Positions 67-15,279 are shown, numbered from the stretch's first letter. The stretch is 49,073 bases of DNA from Oopsacas minuta (GCA_024704765.1 JAKMXF010000050.1:1-49073), one strand, 5' to 3'. Notes: generated from the sequence alone by a model not told the origin. Translations and numbers: made by a program.

Positions 67-452
67 AAACTGTGGCAGAGAAACAACCTCAATATGCTAT
101 AGTTGCTGCTAAACAAACTCAACCTAAATACTCTCTTATAAAACTTATGTTAAATGGAAAATTTCAAGAATTCTATTCATTGAAACAAGTAGATGATCCT
201 AATACTCTCATAGGAGAATTGATACTCTGTAGATCTAAACTGAGTTGTGATTATGTAGTTGGTACTCTGAAGGTTATTATACCAGTACAATACCAATACG
301 ATAAGACAATAGCAGGAATAGAGTTTATTGACCCATTAGGAAATAGCAATGGTGAGTTTAATGGAAAACGTTATTTCAAAACTAATCATTTTTGTGCTAT
401 TTTCTTGCCAATTAATGAGGTTTATATGTGCTATAACAAACAAACGATATAG
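67..452 (+). CDS. Terminal exon of a CAP-Gly domain protein (5' part outside window)
   Basis: Acceptor catAG at 65-66; translation GTLKVI...AGIEFIDPLGNSNGEFNGKRYFKTNHFCAIFLPINEV fits the CAP-Gly pattern GVELDEPxGKNDGSVxGxRYF...GIFV. Confidence 0.75.
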
Positions 453-784
453 AGATCTAGAGAATAGCTTTATTTGTGAACGTTTCTACGATAATATCTA
501 ATGCATTTTATGAGAACTAATTAGTTGTGTTAGCTTATAGTGTACTAGCTGTAATATCCTAACTTTCCCTAAAATTCAATTTGATATTTGTATATATTAT
601 TTTATTCTTAATTATTAATGTTTTGAATTTGATAAGTAGTAATGCAATTATATATAAACATAGATTGGGACATACGGGTTATATAGACTTTTGGACATAG
701 TGAGTTTTCTTATCAGTTAGATAATTCAATGATTGTATATTAAATGCAAAATCTAGCTGATATTTGGAACAGCTGACTCTATGA

Positions 785-1779
785 ATGGCGTCATATAATC
801 AGATGAAAGTGAGATTGCCTATTAGTGCTAGTTCAATTCCTCACAGACACCCAGCTCCCCAAAAGGAATGGGAGTGTCCTTTTTGTGGATCTGTATTCGA
901 TGGAGAATGGACTAAAGATATTCACATGAATTCCTGTAAGAGAAAATCACTTAATATACAACAACAACAACAACAACAACAACATGATACAGCTTGTCTT
1001 CCCGCACAAACTCAGCCTAAGTGTCCTCAACCTACAAGTCAGTTATTATCAATTTCTGTATAATAATAGGAGATATTTCTTACCATTCAATCTTAATAGA
1101 ATCTGAATATTCAATATTCCTGTACATGAGATTACAGCAGAATAATGAAAACATAGTTTACATCAGTGAAACTAATGAACAATACTCTCTCGTTTGGAAT
1201 TCATCTAAATTTCAATACACGGGTCATGCGGTCCTCAGTCCTGGACTGCACACAGGTCGTATTCACTTCAGAACATCTAACAGGTTTAGTAAAGTTAAGA
1301 GTTTTCAAGTTTCTCCGTCTACGAATGACATAGAAATATTAATACAAGATCCTCCAGTAGATAATGTTACAACACGAAAACCTGTCAAGAATATAGCTAG
1401 ATCAACTAAGCAGGTTTTAAACTCTCCACCTTCTCAACCTGCAGAACCAGTTAAGAGTAGTTATGATGACGGACAGATATACGCTAACATTAGTAAATCT
1501 GCCGATAATATTCGTCTTCAATACGCAGTAGACCATTACAAGGAGAAGGTTACAAAGCTTGAGGGAGAGAACTTTAAATTGACAGAAGAGAATGCAAAAA
1601 TGAAAGATATTATTGACTCGTTTCACATTAAGATGAGAGAATTAGAGTCTGAAGTTACACGCTTATCAGTATTAGAAAGCAAATCCAATGTCTCTAAAGA
1701 CAAGCCACAAATAACCCCACCTCCTGTCTCACCTCGCCCTGATATCTACCAAACATCTGTCAAACAGCGCAAGAGTTGA
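785..1779 (+). CDS. Paralog A: CCHC zinc finger + polyQ + unassigned beta-domain + coiled coil + Pro-rich tail (~320 aa)
   Basis: Exons 785-1037 and 1070-1779; a 32-nt phase-1 intron (GTCAGT...TAG) joins two ORFs in frame; CPFC-x12-H-x3-C; domain homologous to paralogs B, C, D. Confidence 0.8.
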
Positions 1780-1873
1780 ATCTTATTTTTAATATTTTAT
1801 TATTTGTATATATTTTAGCTAATAATATTTCAAATAATTGAGTGTTTTATTTAGTTTGTACCCAAATATTAGA

Positions 1874-3616
1874 ATGTCAATACAAGATGATAAACACACA
1901 CAATCTCAGAGCTCACTAGCCAAATGGGGACAGTACCCTCCTTCCAATAGCGGGTACCAGTGGACCTGTAATCTCTGTAACAGCATATTCGGAACTCTAG
2001 AGCAGAGAGAGAAGCATCAGCACGAATGCCCTGGGATAAACCTTCCTAGCCACCAGTCTCAATGGAACAGCAGTGTGTCAAGCAGACAACCCTCCCCTCT
2101 TTATGGTGGAGCAGATATTCTACATAAATATTATCCTCCTATAACACAGCCTCAAATGCCTCTAATACAGGGTATTATATCATTATATGTTATATGACGT
2201 ATTAGTTGAGTTATGAAATAATTCATTTGCTAGAGACTATAAGGCTACCACCACCACAGCTTCCAGTTACTTTAAATCAACACACTACTACACCTGCTAT
2301 GTATCAGCAAACAGCAATAGCACCTGGATATCTACACAATACTACACCTGCTATGTTTCAGCAAAGAGCAATAGCACCTGAATATCTACACAATACTACA
2401 CCTGCCATATCCCAATATACAGTATCAGTTCCTGAATATCTACACACTACCACACCTGCTATGCATCAGAACACAGTAACAACACCTGAATATCAAAACA
2501 CCTATACCTCTGCTACATACAATTATTCAGCAGCCACAGTTCCTGAATACCAAAACACTATTACATCTGCTATGTATCAGCACAAGTCTAAAGAACATGC
2601 TTATCAACATACACCTGCTGCAATTGAATCTCACACAGGAAGTATGTAATGGTGCTCTTTATTCCAGTCTGATACTTGTAGAGATTATTATATTATATAT
2701 TTAGGTAGGAGAGTTGAGCTGTATTGGATGAAGGAGAGCCCTACTCTAGATATACAGGTTACATACATCGACGAAGTTTACGGAGGAATAGTACTGCAGT
2801 GGAATTCAAAATCTGAGATATTTGAGGGTGTAGCTGAGCTATCTTTAGGACAGCACACCGGATGTTTAACACTATCTACTAATGACACCATTCTTCCTAT
2901 TAAACAATTCATTGTTGAGCAAGGAAGTCCCGATCCACAGAAAATCATGATAACTACTGGACAGAGAAGAGTGGTTACACCTCAAACAGGTGAGTTACTA
3001 GACTAGATATAAGATAGGAACATTATAACAATAGTATCGTATATTAGTGACATATGTTGAATCAGATAGAGGAAGAGTAACTAGTGAAGAGAAAAGAAGT
3101 TTACAGGATGATATTAACAGATTAACAGCTGATCTGGATAATAGGAATAATGAACTTGTACAACAGAGACAAGAATATCTCAAATACAAACAAGAAAACA
3201 CAGATCTAACTAAACAAGTAGAGTTACTTCTTAAAGATAACAAAATATTGAGAACAGCAGGTAAACCTGTTGTTAGCATACCTGTAGAGATTGAAACACT
3301 ACAGCTAAAGATTCAAGAATGGGAGAAGAAATATGGAATATTAGAAAATGAAGTGATTAAGTTTAAAGAGGAGAAGAACTCTGCTAATGAATACTCCGAT
3401 TATTTGTATCAACAAAAACAGCAGTTTGAGGATAAGCTACAGGAAGTTCAGCAAAAGTTGAATACGTCTCAAATACAGATTACTGAGTTGAAAGCCAACC
3501 TTCAGGAATTTGTAAAAGATGAGAACGCCCCTCCCCCTCTCCCTACTCGGTGTAAGCCTGTACTCAAAGAGGAAACTCAATCAGCTGATAAAGAAGTAAA
3601 AGAGTCAGAAAATTGA
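1874..3616 (+). CDS. Paralog B: CCHC zinc finger + 18-aa Tyr repeats + unassigned beta-domain + coiled coil + PPLPTR (~519 aa)
   Basis: Exons 1874-2171, 2234-2641, 2705-2989, 3048-3616; all introns GT-AG phase 1, frame continuous. Confidence 0.82.
2287..2630 (+). repeat. Coding tandem repeat, ~54-bp / 18-aa unit, ~6 copies
   Basis: ac(t/c)acacctgc core at 2287, 2341, 2395, 2449, with degenerate copies after; peptide TTPAMxQxxxxxPEY(L/Q)(H/N). Confidence 0.85.
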
Positions 3617-3814
3617 AACTTTTGTATATTTATGCATTGTCTCATCAAACTGTATCGATTATATTCCATATATTTCCTGAATACTTCTCGCCCCCCAACC
3701 GATGCTTGATTTGCCAATTAATGTAATTATATTTGTATTCTAAATAAGCTACAGGAGAATATTTATGGAATTATATGTTAGTATCATTCACACTTATTAG
3801 GGTAATTTAATTCT

Positions 3815-5209
3815 ATGGCAGATAGTAAAGGCTTTTATTACTCCAATCCTCCCACCAGTAAAAGAAAGAGTCTCAAGAATTCAACCGCAGAAGAAAAATT
3901 TGTTCTAACAATTTCAGAGCTTAACACTAAACAGGGACGCTGTCCTCCTTCTAACCCTCCTCCTATCTCTCCTAACAAACCACAATTTTCTATTTTATAC
4001 CCTGAACAAGACAGAAGTATGAATTCATTTTTGTGCAGATCTTGGTGTAGTTTGATTAATTGTATTAGTTCTTACAGGTCCTGTGAAACAGCCGGTTATG
4101 CTGATCTGGACGAAACAGCAAGACACAATTAACAATTATGTCACTTACTTCGATAACCTAGACAATCCATGCAATCTAGAGTGGGATAAATTGAAAGAAT
4201 TATACTCTGCCCTTGTTCATCTAACCTGTGGAGAGCATAGGGGCTGTCTGGCTCTCAGTGACAGAGACATCACTTCAGAAATACAGAGCTTTTCAGTTAT
4301 AGAGAAATCTCAAACTCAGTCTGTAATCCTCTCTATAGTAAAATCACAAGTTAAACCTGGGCTGGTTAAAAGTAGGTCACAAATTTACATGTTAGTATGC
4401 AATAATTATATTACGTGTATGTTTGTGTGTATTAGGTAAACACGTTCCTAATCCGAAGTTAGGAGAGAAGAAGAGGGAGGGAGAGGAATTGCAACATATG
4501 AGAGAAGAGAGAGAGAAATTAATCAAAGAAATAACGTCAATCTCTGCTCAACTGCAGAAGGAGAAAGACTCTTCAAAAATATACAAGAAAGAAATAATTA
4601 GTTTGAGAGACCAAGTAGATAAATTAAAGAAAAAAAATGCGGATAATTCTGAAGTAGCTGCTGGAGAGAGGAATGAAGCTAGGCTAAGAGAGGCTAGATT
4701 AGAGGATGAGATTAAAAAGCTCAAAAATCCAGGTAGACATAATTTACACATGTTATTACATGACTTATAATATTAAATACAGGTTGTGTTTACTAGTTTT
4801 GGATGAAGCTCAACAGAATAATAGCTGGAAACATGTTAACTCTGCTTCTGATAATCCAGTGCCAGCTAAAACAGCTCCTAAATCCTCAGATTATATTAAC
4901 TTTGATACTCTCACACAATACACTGAATATTACACAGAGTTTAAAGAATTAGAGAAATCTAAAAATAATCTTTCCAAAGCTAAAACGGAATCTGAAACAA
5001 AAGCAGCTAGATTATTAGACTTCCAACACGAAGAGAGGAAGAAATTAGAAATTGAGTTAACACAAACCAAGAAAGAATTATCAGAGTCAAAACAAGAAAT
5101 TGAAAAATTGAAAGAAAATGTTCATCGTCCTCCTCTCCCAGCCAGATCTCCCAAACTTCCTATATCTCCTGCATCTCAACAGCAATGCCTCACTCACAAT
5201 TACAAATAA
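3815..5209 (+). CDS. Paralog C: Pro-rich N-terminus + unassigned beta-domain + coiled coils + PPLPAR (~401 aa)
   Basis: Exons 3815-4016, 4078-4371, 4436-4732, 4797-5209; all introns GT-AG phase 1. Confidence 0.82.
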
Positions 5210-5332
5210 GCTTTCTAATTCATTTCACACAAAACTACGTATATATGAATATGACGGACAGTTTATTGAATGATTTGTTTGTAAATTTTGATTCATTTTT
5301 AACATTTTGAATATACTTATAATTTGAATGTA

Positions 5333-5433
5333 CAGTAGAACTCGGATAAGACGTACCCCCTCGGGAAACAGAAATTAGTACGTCTTAACCGAGTGTACGT
5401 CTTAACCGAGTACGTCTTATCCGAGTTCTACTG
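5333..5433. mobile_element. 101-bp MITE, Tc1/mariner-pogo-type (TA target duplication)
   Basis: Perfect 24-bp TIR CAGTAGAACTCGGATAAGACGTAC (5333-5356 / 5410-5433), TA on both sides, internal GTACGTCTTAACCGAG repeats. Confidence 0.9.
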
Positions 5434-5631
5434 TATTTAAATTGATTTTTGTGTTTAGTTTTATGTTATTATGATATGCTCTGGCATAACTCCTGAGCTT
5501 TATCACCTCGAGGAAACACATGATTAAGATGTGATTATTTATATATGTACCTGAGTTAACATTTCTAGTTTCTAGTTTCTACTAATCCATGTCATGATGA
5601 GTTGTATTGCTGTAATAGATAATATACTAGT

Positions 5632-8600
5632 ATGAGTGAATCTACAGGAGAGAGCTTGCCCTCTGTAGCTCCCCAGTCACCTCCAAAGGATAATACCTCT
5701 CTAGCTGAGATTAGCTCCTGGTGGGAGGTGCCTTGTATTGCGCAATATTGTCTAACCTTCTCAGATTCACTCGAGTTACCAACCTTTGAGATAGAAGAGC
5801 TAGAGATAGCTCTGCTACCCTCAGATGAGAATACAGACATACATCCTCTTATTGTCAATATACATGTAGCATTTCTAAAAGGAATATTAGAGAAGAAAGA
5901 GATTGGTGAGTTCTATGTGTGACTATTAAGATTTTATTTTATTAATTATCTGCATTCCTTAGGCCCAACAAACTGGGAGCTGTTGCTAAGATTACACTTT
6001 GTGTGGAGAAGTGAGTTTTTGAATGAGAAGTATAATCCAATGGGAGAAGTTAGCTACCAGCAACTGGACACCAGGACTAAGGTTGAGATTCTCTATAGAT
6101 TATGTCACTTGCGTATGGAGCTAGATGACGTCGCAGAGTGTATCAAGTATTTGGAAGCTTACGAAATGCGTTCTGAAGACTTGGGCATGGACAAAAGGGG
6201 AAACAAGTTATGGTACTTCTACGGAATGAGGCTCTATAGAGAGAGCAAGGAAGCACAACAGCACAACAAACGGTTGGTTGTATTTACTGAATATTCGTAC
6301 TTATTAACCGAGTGTACTTCTCCGAGTTCTACTGTATTTCATTAATCGCGTTTTCTTATAGTTACAAGGGTTCCTCCAGTTTGAAGTCTAGATCAGCTGA
6401 TTCACAGAGGAAAGATCCTGCTACACCTAATATCAAGAGCAAGAACAGCACCCCTAGGACAAGAAATAAGAATCAGCTGAGAGGTATCTGTGTATCTTCT
6501 GTAATGATGTGTTATTTATATGATGTGTTTTTTAGCTGTGATTGGTGACCTGGAGAAGGAGGACAGCTGTGCATCAGCTGATGAGACCTGTAAACAGACA
6601 CCCAAGAGAATTACCAGGTCTGCTAATTTGACATCTAAGTTAGCGAATGATACTACTCAAGATAACACAGGTAAGGATTGCATTACAACTTGCATTGTAG
6701 TATTGTGTTGTATTTATCTGCATTATGTAGATAGTAATCAGACAGATATTCCTATTACTGATACAGCAACAAGTTCAAGTGATACAACCTTATTTGCTGA
6801 AGACAATGAATTCTCTCGTAGGACAGGTGAGTATCTCTATTTATACTATTTGATACTAGTTTTATTGATGACGTATCGTAGGATGGTCTATTGTGTGTAC
6901 TGACCTGAAAGATTGGAATCAGCTATTGAGCTCAATGGAGAAATCCTCTCATAATTGCGAGGTAGAGTTTGTGAAATATGTGAGAAAAGAGTTACTTGAT
7001 ACTCTAACGGAGCTTGACAACAATAAGAAGTCAAATGGAATGTTAACAGGTATGTTTAGTACATCCATTTGACTTGATTAACTTTGTGTTGGTAGAAAGC
7101 GATAGCTCTATAAGAGCTACAAGGAGATTGAACAGCAAAATAAAGCCTAGCTATTCTAGCGAGCAGATTGACTTCACGGGAGTACCAGAATATCCTCGCA
7201 AGAACAGACATGTAGAGTTAGAGAGTATTTCAATGGATGAATTAGTAGCATCAGAGAGTGACAGTATTGATACAGAAGTAGAAGAGGAGAGGAAGAGGGA
7301 GAGAGAGGAAGTTAGAGAGAAGAGAATGTTGGAATGGAAGGAAGCATATTCTGGTACTTAAGACAATTCTATATTGTAACAGTCCAAAGAATCTTTAATA
7401 TTATTTATTGTTAGGGAACATCCAGGGACCCAGGAAGAAGGCTAACCTCCCTAATTCAGCTACTGTTGTTGATATGGAGGAAGTTATTATAGGAGAAGAT
7501 CTACGGATTGCAATGCTCAAGGTTAGCACGAGAGTTAAACAAATTATTATTTAATATATTACAGAAATTAATAGGTAGTTGATGAGCTCAGGAAGCATGA
7601 AGATTGCTGGCTATTCGTAGACCCCGTAACAGAGGCGATAGCACCTGGGTATCATGACGTCATTAAACACCCCATGGATATAGTTACTGTAGAGAAGAAG
7701 TTGAAGAATGAAGAATACTCAAACAAGGTTAATTATCAATTTTCGATAGTTTTCAATTTAAAGTAGACCCTACGTATGTACGTATGTGAATTGTTACAGG
7801 AACAATTCGTGAGAGATTTCAAGATAATGTTCAAGAACTGTAGACGATATAACGGACCAGACAGTGAGTATACAGAAATGGCACACACTATACGACAACA
7901 ATTCAATAGGTTATTTTGTAAACATTTTTCACAGCCAGGTAACACAGGTGTTAATTTACACAAATGTGTCGTATAATATAATTAATCTATTGTGTAGGGC
8001 CCAATGGTAGAGCTAGATCTCCTATCCCTGGTATCGGGAGCAGTTCTGACTCAGAAGAAGAAGTTACGTCATTTAAGTCTCCAGGTACTATATGATTCAC
8101 ATATTTATAAGTCTTACTATATAACGTAGAATTTCCAGTTGTTAAGAGAGTAGGAAGCGCAAGACAGAGGCTGATGGGTCCATGGTTCAGAAGTCCAAAA
8201 CTCCGAAGAGACCGAGAGGAGGGACAGGAGAGGATCTGACTGGATATTCTCGGTACCCTCCTCCGTTCTACCCTCCCTATCCTCCTTACTCAGACACAGA
8301 GACAGGTATACAAATATGAATATTTAATATTATTACGTATTTATTGTCTGATAACCTCTCTCTTGACAGGACACAAATATCCTCACTTCCCTCACGAGTT
8401 TCCGCCCTTCTCCTATTTCCCACCTTTTATGTCCTCCTCCCATCCTCCATTCCCTGCCTACCCTCCTTATTGGGGAGCAGAGCATCAGTACAAGTCCTCT
8501 CACAGGGGAGCTGCTACTGAAGGCTATACAGCTGGATCTACGAAGCAGAGGAGAGAAGAGGAAGCTAAGTTACAGACTGTTATCCGTTCTCAAGGTAATA

Positions 8601-10809
8601 CACTAATCAATATTTGTGATAAATTGATGTTAATCATTATTTAGGTCTGCTGGGTAGCAACGTAGAAGGTAAGCAGAAGAGAGAGAGAGTGTCATCCACT
8701 ACAGCTGAACAGAAGACAGCTGAGCTTTCAAGTCCCGAATCCCTGACACCTGTCACTGAACAGACATCTGATCCTGCAACTCAGAGAGAAGATATTGGGT
8801 CTCGTACCAGTAGCTCCTCATCTGCCGGTCAAGGGTTCCCTCCTCTCTCCCACAGAGCTCCGACAGGACCTTACCACACCCCTGGACCATACGGACACAT
8901 GCAACATCCTTTTCATAGTTAGTCCTATTTATTCACACCCAGTGTCGATTCTAGTATTGATTATGCATCTCTACTCTATAGATCCTTACTATCCTCCTTA
9001 TATGGACTACATGATGGACTCCTACTATCCTCCATCTCCCTTCTTCCCTAGACAGGGACAATACCCTCCTCCTAGACACCATAGAAAGCATAAACACACA
9101 GAAAAACCCTCTAATGGTAAGTATTATGTACGAACAATTAGCTATCACATACAATATGTAGAATTGTTAGACAAATGTGATGGAGTAGCTTCTGTTGGTG
9201 ACTCGGAACAAAAACAAAAACAACAACAACAACAACAACAACAACAAAAATCACTTGAGAACATCCAAGATAAACAAACTCAACCAGACCGGAACAGTCC
9301 AGAGAAAAAGTATTGTATTTATGTTCTTTAATGAAAATTTGAATTTAAATCTGAACAATAAATTAATATAGAAATTCTATGGAGATATGTGCTACAGATT
9401 CCATCCATACTCCTAACCCATCTCCTGACCAGTTCTCATCACTAGATGAAGCTAACACATCTCTTAAGGCTGTATCTCCTACAAATATCAATATGGAAGA
9501 GCAACCTCACTCTACTACTGAAGAAGTTATCACTGACATTGAAAGTAAGATAATAATATGATACTACATTAGTAATTTCTTTGTTATATTTTCTCTTATC
9601 AAGAACACAAATCAATTCCACAAATTGTCAAGCAGCCTCCCTCCCCTTCTAACTCTCCAGATACTTCTTATGTTAAAGCAACATCCTCAAAATCCAAGCC
9701 TCCTATCCCGTGTATGTACCCTCACAGACCCCCCTACCCTCCTATGGGCTACCCGTACTACCCCCCATCCCCCTATCCTCCCATGGGATACCCGCACCCC
9801 TCTTATGATCCATATATAGCAGACATGATGGCTTGGAATCAGCAGCAGACTTTATCTCAAGGTATCTCTAAAATATAATTGTTCTATCTTCCTAATTATA
9901 TGTCCTCACAATTAGGAACACAGTCCTCCAAAAAGAAATCCTCTCGCACTCTCCCTCCTTCTCAGATGGATCCTAGATACCATCAAAACTCTTCCGAGTA
10001 TATGCATAGACTGCCTCCTTTTCCAGGAGCTCCCCAATCACCAGAAGACATCTCCCCTTACTCGTACCCTTCTGCACCCCCTCATCTATCCAAGTACCTC
10101 AAGAAATCTCACTATGAGACAGACGTGCTCCCTCCTCCAGCTGGGTACTGTCTGCAGCCAGACCTCCTCAAACTACCACAGATCGATGATCCCACAAATT
10201 CCAATGTACCTAACTACAAGGAATCATTAGCTGATTACGCATTGCATTTAGCTGGTAAGTTAATTGTTTGTATGATCCTACTCTTGTACTATGTATGTTT
10301 GTATGTGTATTATAGGTGGTAAACCAAGTAACCTTACAGCTGATCCTCCTACTCAGGAACAGATAAGTGAGGATACTATACTCAGCCCTCTCTTCATATC
10401 TTCACAGCAGATACCTCTTAATACCCATGTAAACAATAATAACAACAACAATAACAATAACAATAACAACAATGAGTTAAATTTAGAATCTATTGGGTCT
10501 TCTTATTTTGATTCAGTATCACTAAATTATCCTCCCTCATATCCTACTCAATCCTATCAACCTTACTCAGCATCACGCCCCAACACTCTTCGTTCTTTCT
10601 TCCTACCCTCTGTTCCTCCAGCCCCTCACAGGACAGACCTCAAGCTAGATCTGCTCAAATGTGAACAAAATCGATTCAACCAGTGGCTAGCTAGAAATAG
10701 TATTGAGTCTATGAGCAGGTTAACTTATCAGATGGGTCAGCGAGTTCAAAGCAAACAGGACACTCCAGAAGCTGCTAATACTACCCCAGAAGAACCCTCC
10801 GAGCCTTAG
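5632..10809 (+). CDS. CECR2: CECR2-like chromatin remodelling subunit (DDT-type N-terminus, bromodomain, Pro/Tyr-rich C-terminus), multi-exon
   Basis: ISSWWEVPCIAQYCLTFSDSLELPTFEIEELEIAL and LWYFYGMRLYRE match CECR2; spliced bromodomain DELRKHEDCWLFVDPVTEAIAPGYHDVIKHPMD...KIMFKNCRRYNGPDSEYTEMA (7577-7936). Some 3' exon boundaries are uncertain. Confidence 0.88.
6297..6336. mobile_element. Right-end fragment of the 5333-5433 MITE family in a CECR2 intron (6273-6361)
   Basis: AACCGAGTGTAC...CCGAGTTCTACTG-TA matches the MITE internal repeat and terminus. Confidence 0.7.
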
Positions 10810-11117
10810 CTTAAACGGAAACGTGACAGCTGATTGTGCCACGTGGCAGCTAATGATTGCTCATTTCTGGAATTAATTCATTTCATAGGACAGAATGATC
10901 TGTTTTTGATTCTAACAAATTGCAACAGCATTTTAATTTATTTATATAGCAAGCGACTCACTCATCATAAATACATGTGCTTACATGTTTGATTAAAAAG
11001 TTAAAACTCTTAAATAATATTCTATACACGAACTATTATAGTAAATTTTAAAACTTTTGCATTCTTGATTTCATAATTTAGAACGAAGAGCTCTCTACCA
11101 ATAAATAGTACAGTTTG

Positions 11118-14100
11118 ATGCTAACAGGTTTTGTCTCTAACTTATTACGTCATATCACGAAATTAAGGTATCTAATGGCTGCTAAGCACCCTTCCCCCTC
11201 CCCTCTTGTCTTTCCTCTCCTCGCTCTTGTTGACTTCTATCCAGTATCAGACAAGCTCACCATCCAACTGACTCTCAATGGGAAAGCTAGATCCATGGAG
11301 CGTTCTGGCTCCGAGCAGCTCAGCAAGTGCCTAAAGAGGATACAACTGAATGCCTGTGACAAGAAACAACGGGGTATTAACAAGAAAAACAAATCAACAG
11401 AACCTATGCCCTCCTCTCCTATCACTGACCTACTATTCAATAAAATTCCTATTAACTCAGAGCTAAGTAATTCAGAAGCTTGGAAGGAAGATTGTGTACT
11501 TAGAGTAGGTACAGAGGAGTTCCATGTTAGGGTAAATATTCCTAGAGTATTGGTCATCTCTCTACCGAGACACACCCTTCAGGCCTGTCCAGTCGTTCCT
11601 CAACCCCAGTTTAGTCGCTGCGAGATGCACTCTTGTCAATGGAGTTGGTGTCGAGTAGAAGACCCTGAATTCTGCGAAAAAACTCTCTTACAGGCCCTCT
11701 CCCATGGTAGGGTTGAGCTATCCGATCAGCTGATGAGTACTTTCAAACTTGTCAAAATATCTGACAGCTATGTATACTGTCCTGACTCAGTAGACGTGGG
11801 TTACAAACTATTAGTGTTATGTCAACCTCTTGATCCTATTAGTAGACAGAAAGTCGGAATTAATTGTTATGCCATTAGTTCAACTCCAGTACAGCTGTTT
11901 CCTGAGACGGAGGGACAGGTTGACAGGTTTATGCATACTAGACAGGTGACAGATACAAACCATCTACGTGTAATCTCTTACAATGTAAGCAGGGTAGCAT
12001 TACTAGCATACTCAGTTACTATAGTATATCTATCGATTTAGTAAATATGTGTAGATACTAGCAGACATGTGGGCAAATAGCAAAGACTGTCAAACTGTAA
12101 TCTATCCTCACTGCTCTCCTCTCTCTCTAGATTCAGATTACAGACGAGCACTGACTAATCGAGAACTCATTAACTATCATCCAGACATTGTGTGTCTACA
12201 AGAAGTTAGCAAGTATAGGTACACTGACTCAATAATGCCTGCGATGGAAAGTGTCGGCTTTACAGGACATTTTGCATTAAAAACCGGTGAAATGCCGGAA
12301 GGAGAGGTGATTCTGTACCGCAGAGACCGGTTTGAAGTTATTGACGTGTACTCCCTCCACTCAGGTATATTCTTTAATCAGAGTAATGCAGTATTACAGT
12401 AGCGCTAGGGTTTCATACAGGTTCTCAGGTCCATACGCCTAAAAATGGATTTTAATTCATTTCATACGCATAGACTATACATTATGCATTATGGTATAGG
12501 AGTTTCTGCCCCTAGAGAGATATTTTCATACGCTTAGATAACACCCTGAGTAGCGCGGTAATTCCCCAAGATATATGTCTAGACATTCATTCTCATATTC
12601 CACCGCAGAGACTAAGCATTTAAAGAATCTTGTAGAATTTTCGCGTTCCTGGATTTACATTAGCTGAAACTATTGAGCCTGTATATACCCTAATATATCC
12701 TAATATATCCTTTGGGAGGTACACTCATTTATATGAAAGAGAATTATATACATACGTATATACACAGTCTATTATAGAATTTGTGATTTAGGACTGTTAT
12801 GATTTTTTGGGTGTATCTAGTAACAACTCCTGCACACCAGCTGATAACTGTAGAGAGAATGGTTGTACTGTAGGTAGAATATCACTATCTCCTAGGACAA
12901 CATCCCGTGATGATCTCCTAAACTCATTTCCACTTGCTTTGATTGGAAGCATTCTCCCGTCCATTCTAGAGCTATACTGCCATTTATATTGTCTATGTAC
13001 TCAATGCAGGTGTTAAGAGTTGCATACTGCTTCTTCCAAATAAGTTGTACGTTCTGCTTCGTCTCCTCTATCTTTGTTAGAGTTGTCTTTTTGAATTCTA
13101 CAGAATATACAACAATAACAATGCACCATATTTATCCTATTTAATAAGTACTGTACCTGTAAAATCTGACTCAAATTCTTCTTTCTGCACATGTAAGGTC
13201 AGCTGCTGTACACCTGTTTGTATATCTTTAACTTCAAAGGTGTCAATTCCTGCACAAGTATTCGTGTCACTAATCCAGAGAGATCCCATATGTATTCCCA
13301 CACTTAATTCAATGTTTGATTTTTCAAAACATTCTCCATTCCACTCTAGTTTAAAAGTACCGTTTAAGTTGTCTGCGTAGACTATTTCCCTCTCTAGGGT
13401 AGGTAGCTCTTTCTCCCACGAGATGATGCTTGGTCTCTTCTCTGTAGAAACAAATAATTCAATTCCTGATAGGTCAACATGTACAGCAACGTAAACTGTA
13501 TTTATTTACTTATCTATTTTATCAGGTTGACTCTATATTTGTGTAACTTACTTGTTATTATCTCCTTTTTTGTAATGTTATCTCCTGTTATGACTTCACC
13601 CCCGCTCCAGCTAGTAGTCATACGTTCAAACTTTTCATCAGTTGATTCTGAAGTATCGAAACTTGCTATTGACATTGATCTACGTTTCACTTCTACAAGA
13701 AAGATATCATAGTATACTTAAGTCATTGCCTTAGTAATCGTAAATTAAAATTACTCATCATTGACCTGCTTTAACATTTATTTCACATATTTTTTCAAGA
13801 CACACGAATAGGTTTTGAATATTCCACTTGACCTCAATCTTAGGTATAGTCCAATTAGGCTTTTTCTTAACAATCTCGTCATCCATACGTATAAAGCAAC
13901 GATCTAGGGAATCTGCTACTGAAATACTTTGTAGCTGGTCTTTTAGGAATTTTCTACTTTCAATTAACTTTTTGTAATCCTCAAATTCTTTTTTATTTGC
14001 TGTTCTGATTCCACCAAAATGTTATCTAACTTTTCAAGCAAGCAATTCTTCTTTTCAAGGAAAGCAGTATTCAGCTCAGTGAATCTGTTTTCTATAATAT

Positions 14101-15279
14101 TCTTTTCTCTTTTAATAATATCTCTCAGCTCGGAGAGCTTAGATTCTAACTCATCCGGTAGAGACTCCATTTTCAGTGTCTTAATATTTGGTAACTAATA
14201 TTATTTAGTTTATCAGTTAATTATTTATTTATTTATTTAATCTAACAATTAATGGATTTATTATTGCCAATGCATATTGGCTGATAATAATTTGATCCTT
14301 TTTGATTATTTATTAAATCTATCGTAATGGTAACAGAATATTCTATGTAGTAATCTCTATTCAGTATTCGCTGTATGTTTTTGTAGGGGAGTATATGAGG
14401 GTTGAAGAGAATTCGGTTCTATACAACTCTCTGTTACTTTGGGGAGAAGAAGTTTCATATCACTTCTTATCACTGGGTACTATATTCCAGATTTGTATTC
14501 TAAAAGACAAATCTAATCCTAAGAGAGTTTATCTAGTTGCTAACACACATTTACACTCTAGACCTTCCGTACCGTATCTACGTCTATTCCAGATGGCTCT
14601 GCTAATCACACATATGGAGAGACTGGTAGAGCAGTACAAGAAGAGAGAAGGAAAGGAAGCTTGTGTTTTGCTCTGTGGAGATTTCAACTCTACCCCTGAC
14701 ACTGGACTAATTCAGTTCGTACAAACAGGTGAGATTGATGTAGAATTAAATAAGAAGTACAATACACCTCATTAAACCGACACAGTAATGCTTTTCTTAT
14801 TAAAACCTTTGTATTACTCTTCAATAATACAATAGAATAGTATAGAGCACCTGTACGCTAGGTAATGGTGTAATTTAATTGATATCGGAGTTTGCAATTG
14901 CGCCATTATATTTATGATATTATTAAGCCATTAACGAGTGACTATAGTACAGTTAATTCATTTAATAGGAATGATTGAATCGAACAATATTGACTGGCAA
15001 CCGTGGGCTCTGAATGTACCGACCAAGTTTGTATTCCCAGGGATTGCTATGAGTCATTCTCTCCAGCTGTTCAATGCCTGTGGACCGACTCCTTTCACAC
15101 ATTTCGCTGGCCACTACACTGGGACTCTAGATTACATTTACTGTGATACACAACATTTCAAAATACATGATGTAGCTCCTATGCCTGCCCTCTGGGAAGT
15201 GAGCAAAGAAACTGCCCTTCCTAACACTTGGTTTCCCTCAGACCACCTCCCAATTGTATGCACCTTGAATATTGTTTAG
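11118..15279 (+). CDS. PDE12: 2',5'-phosphodiesterase 12 (EEP/CCR4-family deadenylase)
   Basis: Exons 11118-11984, 12055-12364, 14387-14728, 14969-15279; motifs SYN|ILAD, CLQEV, NTHLH, LCGDFNS, TLDYIY, PSDHLP; PDE12-type N-terminal extension. Confidence 0.92.
12797..14170 (-). CDS. Paralog D, nested in PDE12 intron 2: N-terminal coiled coil + two copies of the unassigned beta-domain (~377 aa after correcting two 1-nt frameshifts; may be a pseudogene)
   Basis: Minus-strand exons 14170-13766, 13692-13552, 13441-13157, 13097-12797 with GT-AG phase-1 introns; exon 3 reads KRPSIISWEKELPTLEREIVYADNLNGTFKLEWNGECFEKSNIELSVGIHMGSLWISD. Confidence 0.75.

Follow-up and report, generated by a model that had tools for sequence, protein, structure and literature searches.

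Copies of a domain with a predicted starch-binding-type fold in a gene cluster of the glass sponge Oopsacas minuta, and a candidate coiled-coil protein family to which they belong

What is the domain of about 90 residues that recurs on one glass-sponge contig, and by what route did it come to sit there in exons flanked by phase-1 introns? The question arises at a complete 49,073-bp contig of Oopsacas minuta (assembly GCA_024704765.1), which was analysed at its full length and is called the window below, and it concerns four genes deposited as the hypothetical proteins LOD99_10651, 10652, 10653 and 10656, here genes A, B, C and D. A first-pass annotation had read the domain as a mobile module carried on a symmetric exon and fused to different partners. 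Our best explanation, to which a probability of roughly 0.6 is given, is that the domain marks a family seen so far in glass sponges only, has a fold of the starch-binding-domain type, and belonged to an ancestral coiled-coil protein that ran from a CCHC zinc finger to a CAP-Gly domain; genes A-C would be shortened tandem paralogues of this protein and gene D a second architecture, with the introns around the domain inherited by descent.

The five copies of the domain lie in the window as follows.

1100..1365, plus strand: domain copy 1, the most divergent copy, with no 3' intron; profile score 107 bits; blastp against the other copies E 6e-9 to 9e-4
2705..2989, plus strand: domain copy 2, a 285-nt phase 1-1 exon with RNA joints on both sides; AlphaFold (AF2) model m7aaf94b2c4e4; orthologues P0009 and P0014
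4069..4371, plus strand: domain copy 3, a 303-nt phase 1-1 exon; orthologues P0005, P0006, P0008 and P0011
13157..13441, minus strand: domain copy 4, a 285-nt phase 1-1 exon, as in deposited P0001; orthologue P0012
12797..13097, minus strand: domain copy 5, in frame to a stop at 12894-12892; its conserved last third lies in another frame, to a stop at 12799-12797

All five stretches show the residue pattern by which they had been picked out; in pairwise blastp the weakest match is that of copy 1 with the truncated copy 5 (E 9e-4) and the strongest that of copy 4 with copy 5 (E 1e-17). When a profile built from the five copies was run against the six-frame translation of the window, these five were recovered at 91-139 bits and the next best match had E = 1.7. 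The domain repeat is real, and the window holds exactly five copies in four genes, as first described.

The exon boundaries were compared with four public runs from one sample that contain the region, the mapping covering genes A-C. Runs X1-X3 are DNA, with introns covered and Nextera adaptor ends present, and run X4 is RNA, in which intergenic positions 3626-3779 are absent and six GT..AG joints confirm splicing in genes A-C; spliced RNA contigs span the three genes without indels. Both joints beside copy 2 (2641>2705 and 2989>3048) agree exactly with the 285-nt 1-1 exon predicted at 2705-2989. For copy 1, the predicted phase 1 was right and the predicted start was not, since the joint 1037>1100, across a 62-nt GT..AG intron of phase 1, places it at 1100 and not at 1070. 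For copy 3, the 1-1 symmetry held and the extent changed from 4078-4371 (294 nt) to 4069-4371 (303 nt), with a joint 4016>4069 and an RNA loose end at 4374 that fits a donor at 4371/4372. The deposited P0001 agrees with the copy 4 exon (13441-13157, 285 nt, 1-1) and with the copy 5 start at 13097; the view of copy 5 as intact down to 12797 had to be given up, because the domain frame stops at 12894-12892. The published genome is a hybrid Illumina/PacBio, Pilon-polished assembly with few introns per gene (10.1101/2022.07.26.501511). Across 700-5300, the assembly differs at dozens of single bases from the public runs of this sample; several of the differences recur in both DNA and RNA runs and so suggest allelic variants, and genes A-C showed no indels.

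Searches of Pfam gave no match for the five copies at E ≤ 10 and none for the domain in 31 family members, even at E = 10, in keeping with its description as unassigned, while PDB sequence searches with the five- and 31-sequence profiles gave chance matches or nothing. An exhaustive HMMER profile search of 1.84 billion cluster representatives returned 44 proteins at E ≤ 1e-3 (22 at E ≤ 1e-10), about 35 of which are clear relatives; the non-family matches that were scanned are bacterial Big_7/PKD-type immunoglobulin (Ig) repeat proteins, with a short strand motif in common, and one spurious HTH_40 repeat protein. The alignment of 31 sequences is almost gapless, with conserved V-x-L-x-W-x-K, T-L-E, T-Y-F-D-N, L-x-W, G-x-H-x-G-x-L and F-x-V. 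Among the clusters looked up, the only taxa named are O. minuta and Vazella pourtalesii (one transcript), both glass sponges, and the Vazella protein, used as a homology query, matched ENA proteins and O. minuta only. The family also occurs in at least four further ENA assemblies, including ERZ20067936, in which the cluster gene order is kept, and ERZ25072740, in which the nesting of gene D is kept. The earlier claim of lineage specificity fared well in these searches, and the family is probably restricted to glass sponges (Hexactinellida) so far and previously undescribed.

One family member of 237 residues, consisting of a disordered region and a C-terminal domain (P0026 cluster, L006, L007, ERZ25072730), is spread over many contigs in 12 or more forms that are nearly identical. 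Its flanking open reading frames (ORFs) are constant, a coiled coil on the upstream side and an ORF of 260 residues downstream, and the whole looks like a recently amplified multi-gene unit.

Around the domain, genes A-C and the sequence upstream of them carry the following features.

785..1779, plus strand: gene A (LOD99_10651), exons 785-1037 and 1100-1779; 310 aa; one phase-1 intron; open frame; RNA joint; deposited P0004
869..937, plus strand: gene A CCHC zinc finger, W-x-C-x2-C-x12-H-x3-C, from the family alignment
1874..3616, plus strand: gene B (LOD99_10652), exons 1874-2171, 2234-2641, 2705-2989 and 3048-3616; 519 aa; introns all phase 1; RNA joints; P0045, P0002
1961..2029, plus strand: gene B CCHC zinc finger, from the family finger alignment
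2234..2641, plus strand: gene B Tyr/Thr/Pro/Gln-rich repeat exon (disordered linker), a 1-1 exon, from translation
3048..3616, plus strand: gene B coiled-coil exon with a PPPLPTR motif at its end and without CAP-Gly; weak matches to many coiled-coil families
3815..5209, plus strand: gene C (LOD99_10653), exons 3815-4016, 4069-4371, 4436-4732 and 4797-5209; 404 aa; all introns phase 1; RNA joints and the loose end at 4374
72..452, plus strand: CAP-Gly ORF, Pfam CAP_GLY E 1.3e-9, 38.3 bits (cut-off 26.5); alignable with the CAP-Gly tails of long members

Gene C is without a zinc finger and ends in RPPLPAR, and its model is identical to deposited P0003. The same parts are found in long relatives with a C-terminal CAP-Gly that passes or approaches the Pfam threshold, namely P0013, P0019 (O. 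minuta LOD99_6799), P0020, P0031, P0035, P0044 and P0062 (the Vazella pourtalesii transcript); six long paralogues score 35-42 bits for CAP_GLY (cut-off 26.5). Most long relatives begin with a finger W-x-C-x2-C-x12-H-x3/4-C, followed by a Tyr/Gln/Pro-rich stretch, the domain and then 600-800 residues of coiled coil, and the W, C, C, H and C are invariant across seven aligned family fingers. With the domain masked, the gene A finger matches P0019 and P0013 (E 1e-5 to 2e-5; 50% identity to the P0019 finger), the gene B finger matches that of P0019 (E 2e-3), and the coiled-coil/Pro-motif ends of A, B and C match each other (E about 1e-3). Searched against PDB and Pfam, the finger profile found generic matches only (rubredoxin knuckles, C2H2 fingers, RNF125 at E 0.03, SLX4 at E 0.8) and no Pfam family at threshold, so that a UBZ4/NEMO-type CCHC ubiquitin-binding finger (C-x2-C-x(9-12)-H-x3-C) is no more than a possible identity for it; the helical parts gave only weak matches to Pfam coiled-coil families, which were taken as composition and not as membership.

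Neither Pfam nor the family tail profile finds a CAP-Gly in genes A-D. The sole CAP-Gly of the window is ORF 72-452, upstream of gene A, and its orthologue in ERZ20067936 (L005:5769-6071) lies directly upstream of the syntenic cluster genes; because of this position, the ORF is probably the last exon of a further upstream family paralogue lost at the contig start. The contig begins with a pure (ATT)n microsatellite (1-57), which probably ended the assembly there and cut off the gene of this exon. In L005, the orthologues of genes B (8683-9837) and C (11207-11839) have a degenerate CAP-Gly tail after the conserved proline motif (family tail profile E about 1e-10), the Pro motif of the gene B orthologue being the same as in O. 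minuta, where the genes end shortly after it. The comparison points to an ancestral protein that probably comprised a CCHC finger, a Tyr/Gln/Pro-rich disordered region, the domain, a coiled coil of several hundred residues, a Pro motif and a C-terminal CAP-Gly; the O. minuta genes A-C would have lost the CAP-Gly end, and gene C the finger as well. The CCHC finger, Tyr repeats and coiled coils, first described as different partners of the domain, are better seen as parts of one ancestral architecture that is complete in the long paralogues.

The long CAP-Gly paralogues adjoin BEACH/neurobeachin-type genes in two species and form tandem arrays of two or three in other assemblies (L003, L001, L008, L009). 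The O. minuta BEACH gene model downstream of LOD99_6799 has a weak family-type CAP-Gly match (L003:8741-8929) and may reflect genes merged in annotation. An ORF at L005:1586-2050, which lies upstream of the syntenic cluster, encodes a coiled coil, PxxP motifs and, at its C-terminus, a W-x-C-x2-C...C-x2-C finger similar to the RanBP2/NZF type.

Synteny and the domain tree bear on the age of this arrangement. L005 has the order of the window, with the family cluster, a DDT/bromodomain gene and a PDE12-like gene, and neighbour exon identities of 53-72%. In a maximum-likelihood tree of the domain, copy 2 groups with P0009 and P0014 (support 100/98), copy 3 with P0005, P0006, P0008 and P0011 (85/92), copy 4 with P0012 (100/99) and copy 5 with P0007 (99/90), the last two pairs being sisters (91/87); copy 1 lies on a very long branch. 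Since the copies group with orthologues of other assemblies, the paralogues and the internal duplication of gene D appear to predate the divergence of these species, and genes A, B and C, shortened paralogues of the ancestral protein, probably form a tandem array that is old and conserved in synteny.

The introns fit the same history. Genes A-C have seven introns, every one of phase 1, and the four internal exons in B and C are without exception 1-1, among them the Tyr-rich repeat exon and a coiled-coil exon; therefore, the symmetry is a property of these genes and not special to the domain exon. In L004 and L005, GT/AG sites flank the domain in phase 1, a few residues ahead of strand 1 and beyond the last strand, as in O. 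minuta, and from these matching sites we infer that the introns around the domain were inherited by descent within the subfamily and not gained by repeated exon insertion. In the long paralogues P0019, P0013 and P0044, from three genomes including O. minuta, the domain lies inside one intronless ORF. With every intron of A-C in phase 1 and long forms without introns, the symmetric 1-1 exon loses the meaning of a sign of shuffling that had been given to it. The domain thus seems to have spread mainly by whole-gene duplication and not as a roaming exon.

Gene D differs from genes A-C in its partner and in its setting.

12797..14170, minus strand: gene D (LOD99_10656), 319 aa as deposited; exons 14170-14031, 13953-13766, 13692-13552, 13441-13157 and 13097-12895; P0001 threaded on the window

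It encodes an N-terminal coiled coil followed by two tandem domain copies, and it is nested antisense in an intron (12403-14394) of the PDE12-like gene (11115-15279, plus strand). The nesting is kept in L004 (ERZ25072740); in L005 (ERZ20067936) the same intron is only about 270 nt long, with no gene inside. A word-based homology search with the N-terminal half of gene D returned only itself. D-like genes with an upstream coiled coil recur in another assembly (L006), and together with gene D they appear to be the only sign of domain-level rearrangement. The tandem copies of gene D seem to come from an exon duplication older than the split of O. minuta from the related species, the sole event that clearly used the symmetric exon.

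Two frame breaks affect gene D. The domain frame of copy 5 stops right after G-M-L-S (12894-12892), in a short C run, while its intact orthologue P0007 (L004:5001-5258, ERZ25072740) is uninterrupted and has the same end point; by this comparison, the break appears to be a one-base frame break. The second lies in an A-run near 13990 (about 13985-13995, minus strand), where the orthologue has a continuous 151-residue ORF and which the deposited model bypasses with a 77-nt intron (14030-13954). As conserved residues can still be read in the two shifted frames, either a very recent truncation or assembly errors must lie behind the breaks.

To place the domain by structure, two AF2 models were made from different members with different alignments. 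The model of copy 2 (m7aaf94b2c4e4), built with four paralogues, is all-beta with a predicted local distance difference test score (pLDDT) of 84 and a predicted template modelling score (pTM) of 0.73, and that of the domain of the long paralogue P0019, built with 31 sequences, is all-beta with pLDDT 88 and pTM 0.79, as expected from the earlier description of a beta-rich domain. The structural matches were the following.

Bacillus cereus beta-amylase starch-binding domain: listed value 9.5; root-mean-square deviation 2.2-2.3 Å over 81-85 residues
Glucoamylase CBM20: listed values 9.2 / 8.2
Human STBD1 CBM20: listed values 8.9 / 8.4
Maltogenic amylase domain E: listed values 8.3 / 8.5
CBM26: listed values 8.2 / 7.3
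Laforin: listed values 8.1 / 7.1
CBM41: listed values 7.9 / 8.0
GPCPD1: listed values 7.8 / 7.2
SEX4 and SNF1/AMPK beta (CBM48): listed value about 7
First unrelated fold: listed values 7.4-7.5

Foldseek agrees (E 3e-3 to 0.1; template modelling (TM) score 0.55-0.62), an ESM Atlas shape search puts a CBM_20 cluster first (TM 0.71 and 0.66), and in a language-model feature search with the P0019 domain CBM_20 makes up 77 of 100 named neighbours, with scores (0.72) that are only a lead. The beta-sandwich of about 90-100 residues superposes over its full length on solved starch-binding domains. Thus, the copies align significantly, both models are all-beta, and starch-binding modules are their best matches; the fold is predicted to be of the starch-binding-domain type (CBM20/CBM48-like), and common descent with CBM20/48 is possible. 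The described families to which the domain might have been assigned at the outset are not reached by sequence, as Pfam and PDB gave none and neither SKICH nor PEGA was found, whereas the fold does correspond to a described type. SKICH was rejected, with no Pfam SKICH/CALCOCO match and no place in the best 50 rows of both structural searches; PEGA, filamin and FN3, considered on architecture, do not rank with the starch-binding domains. In AMPK beta and glucoamylase, glucan site 1 consists of two platform Trp and a Lys. These are not evident at the expected loop positions in the conserved columns of the 31-sequence alignment, by motif inspection only, and sugar binding by the domain is therefore doubtful.

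A mechanism can be proposed from these parts. The coiled coil would dimerise, and one end of the dimer would display a pair of beta-sandwich heads together with a pair of zinc fingers, the beta-sandwich and finger forming a ligand- or cargo-binding head. At the other end, the proline motif and CAP-Gly tail may link to partner proteins, possibly to the microtubule network. The head would more likely bind protein than glucan, because the canonical sugar residues of starch-binding domains are not evident. The O. minuta paralogues without CAP-Gly may be adaptors, acting through the PxxPxR-like motif, or modulators that pair with long forms. A more specific proposal, which we regard as a long shot, is a glass-sponge tether from cargo to cytoskeleton, in which a starch-binding-fold head holds glycogen-like particles or other syncytium-specific cargo, a long dimeric coiled coil spans the distance and CAP-Gly binds microtubule ends; expansion of the family would have gone along with the cytoplasmic streaming that microtubules drive in the hexactinellid syncytium, and the short paralogues of the window would be regulators.

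Several points weigh against the explanation preferred here. The function is read from architecture alone, and the taxa of the ENA assemblies are assigned by synteny and not by labels. The GKNDG motif of canonical CAP-Gly domains serves the binding of EEY/F tails (tubulin/EB); the family CAP-Gly reads G-D-S-D-G, G-N-S-D-G, G-N-C-D-G or G-N-S-N-G at this place, which weakens the reading as a binder of such tails; that binding is not assured. The apparent absence of sugar-binding residues comes from motif inspection and not from residue-level superposition. No sequence link joins the domain to CBM20/CBM48: Pfam CBM_20, CBM_48 and AMPK1_CBM match 0 of 31 members at E ≤ 10, and the PDB profile search was empty. 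Moreover, the sole non-family sequence matches are the bacterial Big_7/PKD-type Ig repeats. These have an L-x-x-G-x-H-x-[IL]-x-[LV] strand motif, and together with Foldseek E values that never fall under 1e-3 they speak for a reading in which the likeness to starch-binding domains is a common beta-sandwich arrangement only, and the domain is an independent Ig-like/E-set offshoot nearest to such repeats, serving as a spacer or generic protein-binding unit. We consider this unlikely: with two independent models and three search methods, the top five to nine ranks went to CBM20/41/26/48 modules, whose alignments were also the longest and tightest.

Less probable still is a reading of the domain as a strongly diverged CBM20/CBM48 that still works as an alpha-glucan (glycogen) module and tethers glycogen particles to coiled-coil/CAP-Gly scaffolds, in the way that plant PTST (coiled coil plus CBM48) or animal STBD1 bring partners to starch or glycogen. 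Starch or glycogen modules (STBD1, laforin, GPCPD1, AMPK/SNF1 beta, SEX4, PTST2/FLO6) do come out best by structure in every search, 66 residues of the SNF1 beta CBM48 superpose at 1.8 Å with 20% identity, and language-model features favour CBM_20 among named clusters. However, there is no profile-level similarity to any CBM family, the conserved columns (W of strand 1, Y of strand 2, L-x-W of strand 3, G-x-H-x-G and F-x-V) look like core or turn positions, and the positions for the platform Trp/Lys are variable and non-aromatic by motif inspection against the reference residues of AMPK beta or glucoamylase. Spread of a mobile module as a symmetric 1-1 cassette into unrelated host genes is likewise improbable: 1-1 exons encode the domain in B, C and D, and the different N-terminal partner and tandem exon duplication of gene D, with a similar arrangement in L006, would suit it, but A, B, C and the long forms have finger, domain order, coiled coil and Pro motif in common, the symmetry is not exon-specific, long paralogues carry the domain without any intron, and orthologues in other species show the arrangement to be old and stable; a truly different partner is seen in gene D only.

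Between the cluster and gene D, a large gene (5632-10809, plus strand) has a DDT-like exon at 5632-5922, a bromodomain-like exon at about 7776-7976 and long poly-Gln/poly-Asn coding runs at about 9195-9371 and 10400-10470; its syntenic counterpart in L005 is an ORF with a Pfam DDT match.

If the explanation preferred here is right, a new domain family and an architecture (CCHC finger, starch-binding-fold domain, coiled coil, CAP-Gly) named in no database are added to what is known of the glass sponges. The family is confined so far to this syncytial, early-branching class of animals, of which sampling is poor. It would also place a starch-binding-type fold inside the cell, in a coiled-coil protein, and the fold seems to lack the customary residues for sugar binding. 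As to method, symmetric phase-1 exons alone had pointed to shuffling, whereas intronless paralogues and syntenic orthologues argue for ordinary gene duplication and domain loss.

Among known systems, CLIP-170, p150Glued, CYLD and KIF13B resemble the long family forms in pairing a long coiled coil with a CAP-Gly over the Pfam threshold; in the family, however, CAP-Gly lies at the extreme C-terminus and is without GKNDG, and we know of no CAP-Gly protein with this beta-sandwich or this finger. The CALCOCO/TAX1BP1 adaptors (SKICH beta-sandwich, coiled coil and zinc fingers) are built on similar general lines, one adaptor uniting a dimeric coiled coil with a beta-sandwich and a zinc finger, both small; their domain order is reversed, and with no SKICH in the structural best 50 or in Pfam the resemblance is of design only. 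From CBM20 (B. cereus beta-amylase 1CQY/1B90, glucoamylase, human STBD1 8X8K, GPCPD1, laforin) the domain is separated by a sequence identity of 7-13%, by the lack of a Pfam CBM_20 match in any member and, on inspection, of an evident binding-site Trp pair, and by its place in intracellular coiled-coil proteins instead of glycoside hydrolases or glycogen enzymes. CBM48/AMPK1_CBM (AMPK beta, yeast Sip2/Gal83, plant SEX4, PTST) differs in that no profile matches, the Lys/Trp sugar positions are apparently lost on inspection, and the C-terminal strands of the domain fit CBM20 better. Yet the first ~70 residues superpose tightest on this family (1.8 Å, 20% identity on 2QLV_E), the hairpin motif L-x-x-G-x-H is similar to that of AMPK beta, and plant PTST/FLO6 proteins also pair a coiled coil with a starch-binding fold.

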